Shown piece by piece: positions 21,868-25,907 of a DNA stretch of 64,000 bases. Position 1 is the stretch's first letter. Each line of letters opens with the position of its first letter. The DNA is taken from the sequence record PQ464595.1; one strand, 5' to 3'. The notes below the pieces were generated by a model. That model saw nothing but the letters and a program-made list of their open reading frames with translations. It was not told the DNA's origin and made no database searches. The translations under genes and the position numbers were made by a program.

Positions 21868-24318
21868 TTATTTGACTAGTAATAGTTGGAACTGCGATTG
21901 AGGCGAATCTTCTTCATCACTCCAGTACTTGTGGAATTTCTCTGGTGTAGCAGCTTGTAGTACTTCACCATTAGCAACCACATATACTTTATGTGACTGA
22001 ATCAGTCTTTGCCAGAATTTAATGGCATCATCGGATTGTAGGCGTCCACTTAGAATTGGAGTACCTTCAACTTTAATAATGTCCATGAACATCTGATAAA
22101 CTACACCTTTAACCGACCGGCTAGAGGCTGTTACATCGACGTTAAACCATCCTTCATCCACATGACCATTAACTGAAGCAATTGCTTCTCCAGTATCATT
22201 GTCATATGCCATGTATCCATCTTTCCCACGGTAAGTTGTCCACTCACCATGATCTTTAACTGGAGTCATGTTTTTTGGTGTATTAGTTTTTGCTTGCTTA
22301 TCTACGTACACTTGTGGGTCCATTCCCATAAACGAATCATATTTAAGTGGCATTTCTTCTAGAACACCTTTGTTAATTAGTTCTTGATCTTCAGCATCAT
22401 CCATATCATGTTCTAGTTCAGCATTTTGTACAATGTCTGCTAGACCACGCATACTTGATTCTGCCATAGCTGCTTCACCACGTTCTTTGCGTTTAGCAGT
22501 ACGCTCTACATAATAAGCAAGTGATTCATCAAAATCAGCAATAGATTCTGAGTACTGTAATGCTTTGTTTATGTGCCGTGGTTCAACTTCTGAATTGTAA
22601 TATGCGTCAAAGACCTTAGTGAAGAATTCTTCGATTTCTTTTTCTGAACCGATGAAATCATTTTCACCATCATCAATATCAACAGTATACATTTTTCCTG
22701 ACGTTTGGCAAACAATTTTTGCTTTTACATCTGCCATTTGGACAAGGAAAAATCCTTCGTCTTGAATATAATCATCAAATTGAACTCTACGTGAATTGTC
22801 ATGGTTCAAGAATCCAGAGTTTTCATTGATATTCTCAACTGCGAATAGCATACCTTCTAGATTAGCATCAGGTGCGTTTTCTTTTTCAACCATATCTTGT
22901 AGAGCATTAATTCCACGCATGTTACCAAGATAATTGACAGGTAATTTAGCCATTTGTTCTTTGGTAAAATCAATACGAAGTTGCTCACCACCATCAGGTT
23001 TAACAAGAATGAAATAATCATCACGGTGTCCGTGACGGAAGACTATATCATATGGTGTATATCCACCTTCAACACGTAATGTGAATTGTTCTGGATCATG
23101 TTTTTTGCTCAATCCATGAATCTTTGGTTGTTCACCAAATTCTTGCCATACTTTCAAGTATAAATCACCCATTAAGCTATCGCCTGGTGCTGGGTATTCT
23201 TGATCACGTTCAAATTCATGACCATCATCAATATTCTTTTCAGTACTGTCAAATTCGTGATTATCTTCAGCATTTAGTTCATTATCATAGAAGTTACTAA
23301 CTTCACGATAAATCAATTTCATTGCCTTATTAGCACGAGCATCTTCTTTATACTTACGAAGTTCTTTTACTAGATTCGCTTGTGGATATGATCTTAAAAC
23401 ATGTTGAATAGCTTTAGAAATATCTGCATTCTTATTACCAGTTATTGAATCTGGATTTTCCTCAAGCCATTCATTAGCGAAATTCGCTAAATCTTTTACT
23501 TGTGGTCCAAATTCAATACCACCACGATAATACGCATCCGGGTCTTTTCCAGAAATATAATCAGGATGCTGATGGGTTTGTTGGTCTTTTGGATTTAAAT
23601 TTCTATTAACTACCTGTTGAATAGTATGTTGAAGTTCATGCTCAACTGTACCAATAGCATAATTAAGAGAACGAGCAACACCATCTAGGGTAGTATTCTT
23701 AATATCTTGATAAGACGGAATACCTAAATCTAACTCATTTTGAGTTCCACGAACAGCACTGCTTCCACCTTTATGAAGGAACTGATTACTCATTTTCATC
23801 TTGATTGTAAGACTATTAATAAGTTCTTTGGTGCGTGGATTCTTTTTCAAATTTTCAGGTAATGAATTATAAATTTCATCAGGATCAATATTCAAATGGG
23901 TACTGCTATTGATATATTTCTTCAAATCATCAGGTGATAGTACTGAAGCACCATACTTACGTTGAAATCTACGCAAGAAATTCATTAGTGCTTCAGCAGC
24001 TTCAGTTTTATGTTGATTAACAAGTTCATGTTGTTTCATCACACCCATAGTTAGAAGTACTGAACCAACATATTTTTGAACTTGTTTCAGTAGTGTTTGC
24101 GGTACTTTAATAATACCAACACCACTTGCTTCATCAAGTTCAACTTCTTCTGATACATGAGATGGAAGGTCAGAACCCTTCTTAAGATTCCCATCCTTCT
24201 CGTCAGCTTTATTAAAATCGTGAGCAACACTTTGGTCGATACCTGCGTCTCTAGCAATATCTGGATTGTGAGCAGCGGCAGCCATTAAATGTGCCTGAGC
24301 TTTGCTTTTACTTGGCAT
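21868..24318 (-). CDS. Large multidomain protein with a zincin HEXXH motif and a C-terminal GNAT-like segment; probable capsid-internal protein
   Basis: TVEHELQH...YYRGGIEF; N-terminal domain paralogous to 24318-25907; acidic xxE linkers. Confidence 0.55.
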   Translation of the reverse strand: MPSKSKAQAHLMAAAAHNPDIARDAGIDQSVAHDFNKADEKDGNLKKGSDLPSHVSEEVELDEASGVGIIKVPQTLLKQVQKYVGSVLLTMGVMKQHELVNQHKTEAAEALMNFLRRFQRKYGASVLSPDDLKKYINSSTHLNIDPDEIYNSLPENLKKNPRTKELINSLTIKMKMSNQFLHKGGSSAVRGTQNELDLGIPSYQDIKNTTLDGVARSLNYAIGTVEHELQHTIQQVVNRNLNPKDQQTHQHPDYISGKDPDAYYRGGIEFGPQVKDLANFANEWLEENPDSITGNKNADISKAIQHVLRSYPQANLVKELRKYKEDARANKAMKLIYREVSNFYDNELNAEDNHEFDSTEKNIDDGHEFERDQEYPAPGDSLMGDLYLKVWQEFGEQPKIHGLSKKHDPEQFTLRVEGGYTPYDIVFRHGHRDDYFILVKPDGGEQLRIDFTKEQMAKLPVNYLGNMRGINALQDMVEKENAPDANLEGMLFAVENINENSGFLNHDNSRRVQFDDYIQDEGFFLVQMADVKAKIVCQTSGKMYTVDIDDGENDFIGSEKEIEEFFTKVFDAYYNSEVEPRHINKALQYSESIADFDESLAYYVERTAKRKERGEAAMAESSMRGLADIVQNAELEHDMDDAEDQELINKGVLEEMPLKYDSFMGMDPQVYVDKQAKTNTPKNMTPVKDHGEWTTYRGKDGYMAYDNDTGEAIASVNGHVDEGWFNVDVTASSRSVKGVVYQMFMDIIKVEGTPILSGRLQSDDAIKFWQRLIQSHKVYVVANGEVLQAATPEKFHKYWSDEEDSPQSQFQLLLVK

Positions 24319-25907
24319 TATATATTCCTTAAGTCTGTAATGAACTCTATATACGTAACATCCTTGTTAAGTATTTGTTCTACTTCCTCTGGATAAGAGA
24401 TGTAGAATCTAATCATCATCTGGAAAGCAACTAAGATTTGCTTCAGAGTCCATACGTATAATGTTTTATCATCAAAGTGAACATCCACTTTAACACTAGT
24501 ATCTTCTATTTTTTCAATACGGAAGGTTTTACCCATAGTACTGAAAGTAAAGTTCTCACTAATTTCAAATGGAACTTCTAAATGTTGAGCGTCTTCTTGT
24601 AATGAAAGAATAAGGTCATTGATTGATGCATCATTCACTTCTTTACGAGAGCCAGTAATGTATTCTAAGTCATCAATAATATCATCAGCTTCATACCATG
24701 TAATCTCAGATAGGATACCAAAAAGATTCAATGCTTGTTTAGCATTTAGATTTTCAATATCTTCAAATTCTGGTTCACCAGAACGGATTTTAAATTTATA
24801 AGAATCTTTCGAGAAATTATTTTTGATTAGATCAATAATCCATTCACGCCCTTTACGAATAGTTAACTGTTGAATATCACTCTTTGAAGAACCACGAGCG
24901 GTTGTTTCATATTTGTCAACTTTATACATCATTTTGTATATTGACAGCATAACGTCAACATTAGCTTCTAGTACTTCTTCCGGTAAATCGGTAGTACTGA
25001 AATCTACACCATTCTCTTTCAAATTATCATAGAACGGAGAAACATACTTATAGACAGCACTTAATGCTTTCTTATACTTATCGTGATGTTTCTTGTACAG
25101 TACTGTTAAGAATTGTCGAGAGGTTCCTGATTCTTGCATTGCTTTACTGATAGCAGCATTGATAGCTTTGTTCTTATCAGGATTCAATTCATTCTTAAGA
25201 GAACTCTTTTCTAATTCAAGTTGAACTAGATCAATAACATTACCAAGTTGTGGTGTATATTCAATACCTGAACTATAGTAATCAGTCTTATCCCATTCAT
25301 GGCTGTAATCATCATTCATCTTAAGCTGTTCATCATTTTTATTAATAAATGACAATGCCATTGATTGAACTGCGTGTTGCATCTCATGGTAAGTATTACT
25401 CATGATTTTACTTGCGTTATCAAGGAATGATGGTTTTGGTCCTAGTTGTTTTGTAACAACAGTAACCAGTACTGAATATGTTGATGTGTTCTCTTGTGAA
25501 CCACCGATGCCTTGAGCATCAGATAGAATCATTAAGTTCAGTTTCAAACGATCCTTCAAAAGAGCAATTAAACCTGGGTTCGCACCTTTGAAGTTCAATT
25601 GTTGGAAGAACGTTTCCACATCAAATGGAATATTAATACTCTTGTTTACAATATTTTGAGCAGTCTCAGCGGAGATATTCTTAGCTCCGTATTGACGCTG
25701 TAGTTTGCCTATTGCTTGTTTAGCATCAGCAATGACACGTTGTTTTTCCTCTGGTGTTGTAGTACTTGGCATGAAGAAATCAATACGATTGATGTACTGA
25801 TTCATCTTAAAGCACAAATACGACGCAACATACGTGTTCACTTTTTGAAGTATCTCTTGAGGTACTTTGATAATTGCTTCGTTGAGTTGATTATATCTCA
25901 CTATCAT
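24318..25907 (-). CDS. Zincin HEXXH protein, paralog of 21868-24318; probable capsid-internal protein
   Basis: TYHEMQH...YYSSGIEY; N-terminus [10 protein letters not shown]|A. Confidence 0.55.

Follow-up and report, generated by a model that had tools for sequence, protein, structure and literature searches.

Erwinia phage Kaldavass (sequence record PQ464595.1), a jumbo myovirus with a genome of 366.5 kb, belongs to the Rak2/CBB/GAP32/121Q group. The stretch analysed here, called the window, comprises 64,000 nucleotides of this record, and window positions are record positions minus 124,000. This analysis concerns two adjacent open reading frames (ORFs) on its minus strand, encoding proteins of 816 and 529 amino acids (aa), and the HExxH domain that these proteins share. 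A preliminary description, made from the DNA letters, had taken the two for tandem metallopeptidase-like paralogs that are packaged in the capsid and processed by a protease; both ORFs are annotated coding sequences (CDSs) with the coordinates and strand given there. The gene pair occurs in 72 phage records, every one of them Rak2-like.

Layout and paralogy of the two proteins

The genes and the segments of their products are as follows; a slash marks a predicted cut.

21868-24318, minus strand: 816-aa ORF, annotated CDS 'virion structural protein'
24130-24318, minus strand: 816-aa protein, residues 1-63, leader; MPSKSKAQA... module, then VSE57/E and LDE63/A; predicted propeptide
23269-24129, minus strand: 816-aa protein, residues 64-350, shared HExxH domain, supported by paralogy and invariant columns
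23626-23640, minus strand: 816-aa protein, residues 227-231, HELQH
23512-23514, minus strand: 816-aa protein, invariant Glu269
22459-23268, minus strand: 816-aa protein, residues 351-620, middle domain; two beta-meander-plus-helix modules in the AlphaFold2 (AF2) model, ending MAE620/S
22354-22458, minus strand: 816-aa protein, residues 621-655, acidic linker predicted to be disordered, flanked by MAE620/S and LEE655/M
21871-22353, minus strand: 816-aa protein, residues 656-816, C-terminal GNAT-fold domain
24318-25907, minus strand: 529-aa ORF, annotated CDS 'virion structural protein'
25878-25907, minus strand: 529-aa protein, residues 1-10, short leader followed by Ala (MRYNQLNE/A if the start is GTG)
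25008-25877, minus strand: 529-aa protein, residues 11-300, shared HExxH domain
25374-25388, minus strand: 529-aa protein, residues 174-178, HEMQH
25260-25262, minus strand: 529-aa protein, invariant Glu216
24321-25007, minus strand: 529-aa protein, residues 301-529, C-terminal region; two beta-meander-plus-helix modules (AF2)

The two proteins are indeed tandem paralogs, since BLASTP aligns them over about 387 residues with 24% identity at an E-value of 1e-19, far beyond chance. All the motif strings quoted in the preliminary description are present in the translations, including IIKVPQ..LL, HE(L/M)QH and YY..GIE(F/Y).PQ. So are the strings quoted for candidate sites, namely the ten-residue leader followed by Ala in the 529-aa protein and the 19-residue opening module, VSEEVELDE/A, MAE/S and VLEE/M in the 816-aa protein, as well as the C-terminal string GVVYQMF...ILSG..QSDDAIKFWQRL of the latter. 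An alignment of 33 sequences drawn from both paralog families (A3) shows H-E-x-Q-H-x-x-Q, G-x-E, two Tyr and a Gln among its invariant columns. Neither protein has a match in Pfam, NCBIfam or the PDB sequences; their only library matches are PHROGs 22033, 25121 and 18596, labelled 'virion structural protein'.

The AF2 model of the 529-aa protein has a predicted local distance difference test score (pLDDT) of 85 and a predicted TM-score of 0.76. That of the 816-aa protein has a pLDDT of 77, and long segments below 50 are confined to residues 1-17, 43-65 and 615-666. Fold searches with the middle domain of the larger protein gave noise-level matches only, such as frataxin and Med17C, and those with residues 301-529 of the smaller one gave no convincing match.

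Translation of the 529-aa ORF probably begins at the GTG at 25901, which would make the annotation two codons off and yield a protein of 527 aa with an 8-residue leader, MRYNQLNE. This start is preferred because the spacing of the Shine-Dalgarno sequence AAAGGGGA fits it better (7 nt, against 1 nt from the annotated ATG at 25907; stretch 25899-25907) and because most homologues begin MRYNQL.

The shared HExxH domain and the domains fused to it

A search of 1.84 billion representative proteins with the A3 profile gave 161 representative clusters at E<=1e-3, which define the family of the shared domain. Beyond the full-length proteins of Rak2-like phages, most of the matches are stand-alone phage proteins of 270-310 aa (about 290), which fall in PHROGs 34216 and 38692 and are homologous to the shared domain along its whole length (hhalign probability 99.9%, E 2e-32). 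XacN1 ORF117, encoded near rIIB, RNA ligase and M23 peptidase genes, is a stand-alone example, and metagenomic contigs with the same context are found. Of the 143 representatives examined, 141 have the HExxH motif, which is invariant in alignments A1, A2, A3 and A4. At a mean identity of only 19%, the 70 aligned stand-alone members still share all three HExxH residues (H, E and H), a single Tyr, a single Ala and the Glu of 'IEF', which in the family lies 37-38 residues downstream of HExxH. A signature of its own, L-x-E-G-LIKVP ... HExxHxxQ ... YY..x.IEFxPQ ... KWKKAVK, marks the family, which is uncatalogued: it has no Pfam or NCBIfam entry, and its members are labelled only 'virion structural protein' or unknown function. 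Group 2.2 jumbo phages have been described as encoding a 'SprT-like metallopeptidase' in 1-3 copies, which may or may not belong to the HExxH family (Iyer et al. 2021, PMC7824862).

In the model of the 529-aa protein, a three-stranded sheet (residues 122-151) is followed by a long helix (161-188) that carries HExxH, a loop, and Glu216, three residues before a helix at 219-237. Glu269 of the 816-aa protein, like Glu216 a candidate third metal ligand, also stands three residues ahead of the next helix. The same order of elements has been published for the minimal zincin or metallopeptidase (MPTase) core (PMC5512222). The predicted topology thus fits that of a minimal gluzincin.

The C-terminal part of the 816-aa protein, called GNAT-like in the preliminary description, has a GNAT fold: in a structure search its last 130 residues or so (684-816) match dozens of GNAT structures. 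The strand-loop-helix around Gly738 and a helix with A..FW sit at the positions of GNAT motifs A and B. Gly738 is the sole invariant Gly at the position of the pyrophosphate loop, whose consensus is Q/R-x-x-G-x-G/A, and by eye a Trp occupies the position of the catalytic Tyr of many GNATs. The fold is supported; acyltransferase activity and cofactor binding are putative. Profile comparison (hhalign) of this domain with the Pfam-positive GNATs of two of the fusion proteins listed next, P0142 and P0131, was negative.

Several family members, encoded on phage-like contigs, join the HExxH domain to other domains.

P0095: N-terminal Acb1 (anti-CBASS), E 1e-39, and the HExxH domain
P0084: LigT/2H domain and two copies of the HExxH domain
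P0142: ART-PolyVal, E 1.9e-17, GNAT and the HExxH domain
P0131: GNAT and the HExxH domain
P0144 and P0156: eCIS_core zincin and the HExxH domain

In these fusions, the sequence L-x-E/G-L-I-K-V-P again precedes the HExxH domain, for instance as RLDE/GLIKVP or RLTE/GLMAVPP. Several effector-type domains in one phage polypeptide are the hallmark of polyvalent proteins, and such a combination is found in the 816-aa protein itself (HExxH and GNAT-fold), to which the relatives add Acb1, LigT/2H, ART-PolyVal, GNAT and eCIS_core. Polyvalent proteins are predicted to be packaged and injected, with an MPTase as hub and partners that include ART, GNAT and 2H domains (Iyer, Burroughs and Aravind 2017, PMC5512222). 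A role in counter-defence or host takeover, proposed in the preliminary description, fits the fusion of remote relatives to Acb1, 2H, ART-PolyVal and GNAT domains; the substrates would be host proteins. The metagenomic contig that encodes P0095 (L019:1497-2024 and neighbours) also carries stand-alone ART-PolyVal, H-NS-like and RNA ligase genes.

Leaders, Leu-x-Glu sites and virion association

The head module of Kaldavass lies about 50 kb from the gene pair, beyond the window, and encodes a Gp23-family capsid protein (E 2.7e-91), a putative scaffold, a Peptidase_S77 head protease and the portal. The protease belongs to the T4 gp21 family (Peptidase_S77 E 1.2e-21; 34% identity to T4 gp21, E 2e-17). 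In the capsid protein, MLRE/SATAG aligns with FLTE65/AEIGG of T4 gp23, a known gp21 cleavage site (see also PMC9026906). Both findings support the preliminary description: the phage has a gp21-family protease, and its capsid protein keeps the T4 L-x-E site. On these two grounds, the specificity of the Kaldavass enzyme can fairly be taken to be L/I-x-E.

The persistence of [LIVM]-x-E tripeptides was followed through 22 sequences of the 816-aa family and 24 of the 529-aa family. The 816-aa protein has 12 such sites, of which only four recur in 21 or more homologues: LDE63/A, MAE620/S and LEE655/M in all 22, and VSE57 in 21; each of the others persists in at most 12. In the 529-aa protein, one site of eight is kept, LNE10/A (24/24), and the remainder are found in at most 10 of the 24. 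The four conserved sites of the larger protein fall in its segments of pLDDT below 50, and LNE10/A is at the extreme N-terminus of the smaller one. The Glu residues that had been singled out as cleavage sites are therefore the very ones conserved across homologues, in linkers predicted to be disordered, and these conserved linear motifs match the specificity proposed for the co-encoded protease, which may cut there.

The leaders are similar in form to those of T4 internal proteins (NC_000866), where IPIII starts MKTYQEFIAE/A and IPI starts MKTFKEFTSTTTPVSTITE/A. T4 propeptides are 7-65 residues long, and within the capsid targeting sequence it is positions 8 and 10 on which processing depends (PMC9026906). 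Both Kaldavass proteins have an N-terminal candidate propeptide that ends in [L/I]-x-E within this range of lengths. In some homologues of the 816-aa protein, a short leader replaces the MPSKSKAQA... module and the LDE/A site is retained. The 816-aa leader matches PHROG 16759 and has no match among Pfam families. The module (24148-24318, minus strand) is present in one copy per Rak2-like genome, which rules it out as a general tag in the Kaldavass genome. It also occurs as small stand-alone ORFs, gp383 of 201phi2-1 (87 aa) and a 52-aa ORF of Stenotrophomonas phage BUCT555 (loci L017:2471-2734 and L018:2501-2659). The latter lies between the major capsid protein gene and a terminase-adjacent 687-aa ORF, possibly the portal, to judge by position alone.

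In Asteriusvirus, the second gene of the pair encodes only 263 aa (121Q gp51, L010:4548-5339; phAPEC6 gp161c, L009), comprising the leader, the acidic linker and the GNAT-fold domain. 121Q gp51 reads from the same N-terminal module as in the 816-aa protein through VKE/ASMRS, the acidic linker and KLNE/MPQRFD to the C-terminal domain, and it has neither the HExxH nor the middle domain. This layout is as expected if the 816-aa protein fuses separable units by way of cleavable linkers, and it agrees with the earlier suggestion of a polyprotein. Either the 816-aa architecture is a lineage-specific fusion or 121Q has undergone a deletion.

Virion association is well founded for the family, from homologues in the purified particles of other phages rather than from Kaldavass particles, and to that extent the claim that these are packaged proteins holds. 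CBB_322, the homologue of the 816-aa protein, was detected by mass spectrometry in CsCl-purified particles with 30 unique peptides and 43.6% coverage, and the supplement of the same study marks CBB_321 and CBB_322 as structural in related phages also (PMC5259590). In phAPEC6, both gp162c, the homologue of the 529-aa protein, and gp161c were detected by mass spectrometry (PMC7247149). 121Q gp50 and gp51 and the GAP32 homologues are annotated as structural.

The pair sits within a long block of co-oriented genes. Its upstream neighbours encode a KTSC-domain protein, a ClpS-like adaptor, a phage IF3 and a Dda helicase; those on the downstream side encode a DUF3307 membrane protein and both subunits of topoisomerase II. 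Gene order around the pair is the same in CBB, 121Q and phAPEC6. Other features of the surroundings are:

25891-26424, minus strand: KTSC-domain gene (Pfam KTSC E 8e-14), in the same co-oriented cluster, upstream of the 529-aa gene
26425-26497, minus strand: between the ClpS-like and KTSC genes, a terminator-like hairpin (CTCCAAGGTT, 23 nt, AACCTTGGAG) followed by T7
26498-27708, minus strand: ClpS-like adaptor (Pfam ClpS E 2e-13) and full two-domain IF3 (IF3_N E 4e-18, IF3_C E 3e-14), adjoining the cluster
27890-28438, minus strand: protein of 178-182 aa
40551-40886, minus strand: annotated 111-aa virion structural protein CDS0353

The KTSC protein starts with a 12-residue leader that ends I-L-E12 and is followed by AIAP; the I-x-E/A is invariant in its homologues CBB_320 and 121Q gp49, and CBB_320 was found in virions (PMC5259590). 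It may be a third leader-bearing packaged protein of the cluster. CDS0353 starts MRYSQITE/D, close to the 529-aa family consensus MRYNQLxE. The protein of 178-182 aa has an N-terminal segment, ..FNAFSIKVPGEVL.., that resembles the (L/I)IKVPxExL start of the HExxH domain without the preceding Glu; its homologues CBB_316 and 121Q gp45 are annotated as structural, and phAPEC6 gp167c was positive in mass spectrometry. As a general classifier, an [LI]-x-E[AGS] site among the first 40 residues fails: 5 of the 22 annotated virion proteins of the window have one, against 6 of 53, with no clear enrichment. The loop of the hairpin at 26425-26497 contains GATAAATA, similar to the T4 late-promoter box. 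Exact matches to the T4 late-promoter octamer TATAAATA in the window number 5, with 5.9 expected, and are thus not enriched.

Proposed packaged cargo, rival readings and known systems

The reading that we favour, with somewhat more confidence than doubt, is that the two proteins are capsid-packaged, protease-trimmed cargo of the polyvalent type, built around a divergent metallopeptidase-like core. By analogy with T4, the N-terminal leaders would direct both proteins into the prohead. There the S77 prohead protease would remove them, as happens in T4 internal proteins and Alt: some 8-10 residues from the 529-aa protein and 63 from the 816-aa protein. The latter looks like a small polyprotein because of its internal sites, and conservation and predicted disorder suggest further cuts after Glu620 and Glu655. 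Three pieces would result: 557 residues with the HExxH and middle domains, the acidic linker of 35 residues, and a GNAT-fold product of 161. The products would remain in the head with the DNA, be expelled with it and act early on host proteins. Motifs, fold and fusion partners suggest that the HExxH product would have peptidase activity and the GNAT-fold product acyltransferase activity. The HExxH domain itself would most likely be a very divergent, minimal gluzincin-type metallopeptidase, of the sort that serves as a hub in polyvalent proteins.

A number of results weigh against parts of this reading, and most of them bear on the putative zinc-dependent enzyme. The confident model of the 529-aa protein found no zincin in Foldseek searches of the PDB, AFDB clusters and BFVD, in VIA-wide (VIA-align, 48,161 chains), in a second look with VIA or in the ESM Atlas; among the matches listed, those from the PDB and from AFDB and the Atlas were at noise level, and the significant ones from BFVD were family members only. 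The GNAT domain of the larger model was recovered by fold search and a zincin was not, although multidomain models weaken such searches and a miss is no proof of a different fold. The family profile had no match among PDB sequences. Aligned by hhalign with the MPTase of the N4 virion RNA polymerase (vRNAP), as a single sequence and as a 14-sequence profile, it paired only the 15 columns of the HExxH helix, at a probability of 11%. Pfam matches to zincins among the 70 members are few and weak (E 0.03-0.1), namely eCIS_core in five, BSP in two and DUF6782 in two. Neighbours in ESM feature space (LPD23, SprT-like, Zn_peptidase_2, ATLF) all scored below 0.9 and were set aside as leads only.

It could be, then, that HExxH does not mark a peptidase here, and that the domain is a new fold whose His and Glu residues serve another hydrolysis, bind a metal or ligand, or have no enzymatic function. 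The missing structural or profile link to any zincin, despite a confident model, speaks for this. However, HExxH and the downstream Glu stay invariant at so low a mean identity, the order of secondary-structure elements is that of the minimal zincin core (PMC5512222), and eCIS_core, BSP and DUF6782, the only Pfam families that recur among the weak matches, are all zincins. We consider this alternative improbable. The preliminary claim of an HExxH metallopeptidase has the invariant motif on a helix in its favour and finds no backing from fold and profile searches. The domain is probably a very divergent gluzincin-like enzyme and a candidate member of the zincin superfamily.

Two further points concern the other domain and the processing step. 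The C-terminal domain of the 816-aa protein has no Pfam GNAT match, and the literature on CBB, phAPEC6, 121Q, XacN1 and Sharanji yielded no peptide-level or N-terminal evidence of processing. A last one lies in the junction at the N-terminal boundary of the HExxH domain. This junction is recognisable in 109 members, and in 99 of them, 10 internal junctions of fusions included, an [LIVM]-x-E stands right before it. The leader in front of it has a median length of 9 residues (range 3-27), and in almost leaderless members, such as those starting MLE/GTINVP or MLNE/GIIQVP, the L-x-E-G-LIKVP junction is kept with only 3-5 residues before it, too short for a T4-like targeting sequence. Because the junction persists there, its L-x-E may have a role in the fold, whether in addition to cleavage or in place of it; other possibilities are a zymogen-type activation cut and self-cleavage at this point. 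The linker sites of the 816-aa family and of 121Q gp51, which lie outside any folded domain, make a firmer case for the prohead protease than this junction does.

The zymogen idea can be extended. In this form, which is possible and which we hold with a good deal of reserve, the HExxH domain would found a new, structurally unmatched family of capsid-delivered zymogen metalloenzymes in T4-related jumbo phages. The prohead-protease cut at L-x-E/G-LIKVP would create the mature N-terminus and activate the enzyme only in packaged particles, and the module would act as carrier or hub for anti-defence cargo (Acb1, 2H, ART and GNAT) that is delivered ahead of phage gene expression.

Self-cleavage would mean that the HExxH domain cuts its own L-x-E/G or L-x-E/A junction, as well as other linkers, to free its neighbours, the prohead protease being uninvolved. 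The frequency of the motif at the domain boundary, internal fusion junctions included, is compatible with this, and autoproteolytic release by MPTase domains has been proposed by Iyer et al. (PMC5512222). Yet most family members are stand-alone and would have only those 3-27 residues to release, 121Q gp51 has the same linker sites with no HExxH domain in the same polypeptide, and the sites, like that of the capsid protein, match the specificity of the co-encoded gp21-type protease. We consider self-processing improbable.

The putative location in the head rather than in the tail is another weak point of the packaged-cargo reading. Within the head, the proteins could have a structural or assembly role instead of a host-directed one, for instance in an inner body, with any HExxH activity exerted inside the prohead or capsid. 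Inner-body proteins of phiKZ are typically tandem paralogs processed by the prohead protease. Like those of phiKZ and SPN3US, which serve as inner-body and ejection proteins, the Kaldavass pair are paralogous jumbo-phage virion proteins in tandem, with Glu-ending sites for a gp21-related protease, predicted in the case of Kaldavass. The two sets show no sequence similarity, and the phiKZ cleavage motif is S/A/G-x-E, as against L/I-x-E in Kaldavass. The high peptide number of CBB_322 would suit an inner-body component, and an inner body is visible by bubblegram in the capsids of the Kaldavass relatives 121Q and phAPEC6 (PMC7247149, PMC5646251). Against such a role, the HExxH domain occurs in small stand-alone proteins and fused to Acb1, ART-PolyVal and 2H enzymes of counter-defence or takeover, and its invariant catalytic-type residues favour an enzyme. 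We regard the inner-body explanation as unlikely.

Returning to the reading of packaged cargo, the closest precedent is provided by IPI, IPII, IPIII and Alt of T4. The Kaldavass head is likewise T4-type, its capsid protein being of the Gp23 family, and the phage encodes an S77 protease; the leaders, of 8-63 residues compared with 7-65 in T4, stop at [L/I]-x-E, with Ala, Ser or Gly as the next residue; homologues of the pair are in virions; and enzyme-like cargo domains are present, as in Alt. In contrast to the T4 proteins, those of Kaldavass are far larger, are multidomain and have internal sites too, and the cleavage and ejection supposed for the HExxH family would follow by analogy. PHROG and Pfam scans gave no sequence homology to the T4 IPs or Alt, only the family-specific 'virion structural protein' PHROGs. 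The predicted structure of the HExxH domain resembles the MPTases of phage and plasmid polyvalent proteins (C-terminal region of N4 vRNAP, P1 DdrB, ArdC) in that the HExxH helix comes behind a three-stranded sheet and a Glu lies at the helix that follows. Both groups occur in phages and share polypeptides with ART-PolyVal, GNAT and 2H domains; packaging is known or predicted in both cases. Unlike these MPTases, the HExxH family is mostly stand-alone, and profile and structure searches gave no significant similarity to them. The C-terminal domain of the 816-aa protein differs from typical GNAT acetyltransferases in the absence of a Pfam match, the single loop Gly and the Trp in place of Tyr. 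Delivered cargo as a concept is not new: T4 IPs and Alt, polyvalent proteins, and the ejection proteins of phiKZ and SPN3US are instances of it. This analysis adds the definition of an HExxH family that is both uncatalogued and widespread, with a fixed L-x-E junction and a set of fusion partners, and, for Rak2-like phages, a predicted polyprotein anatomy.

Injected proteins reach the host together with the phage DNA and act ahead of phage gene expression, which makes them a first line against host defences. To our knowledge, few such proteins have been described beyond T4, P1, N4 and phiKZ. If the packaged-cargo reading is true, Rak2-like and XacN1-like jumbo phages would deliver a pre-made enzyme kit. 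The conserved L-x-E sites would then provide a simple rule for finding further cargo, such as the KTSC neighbour and the small virion protein that starts MRYSQITE, and the leaders could be used to load foreign proteins into jumbo-phage heads, like the capsid targeting sequence of T4.

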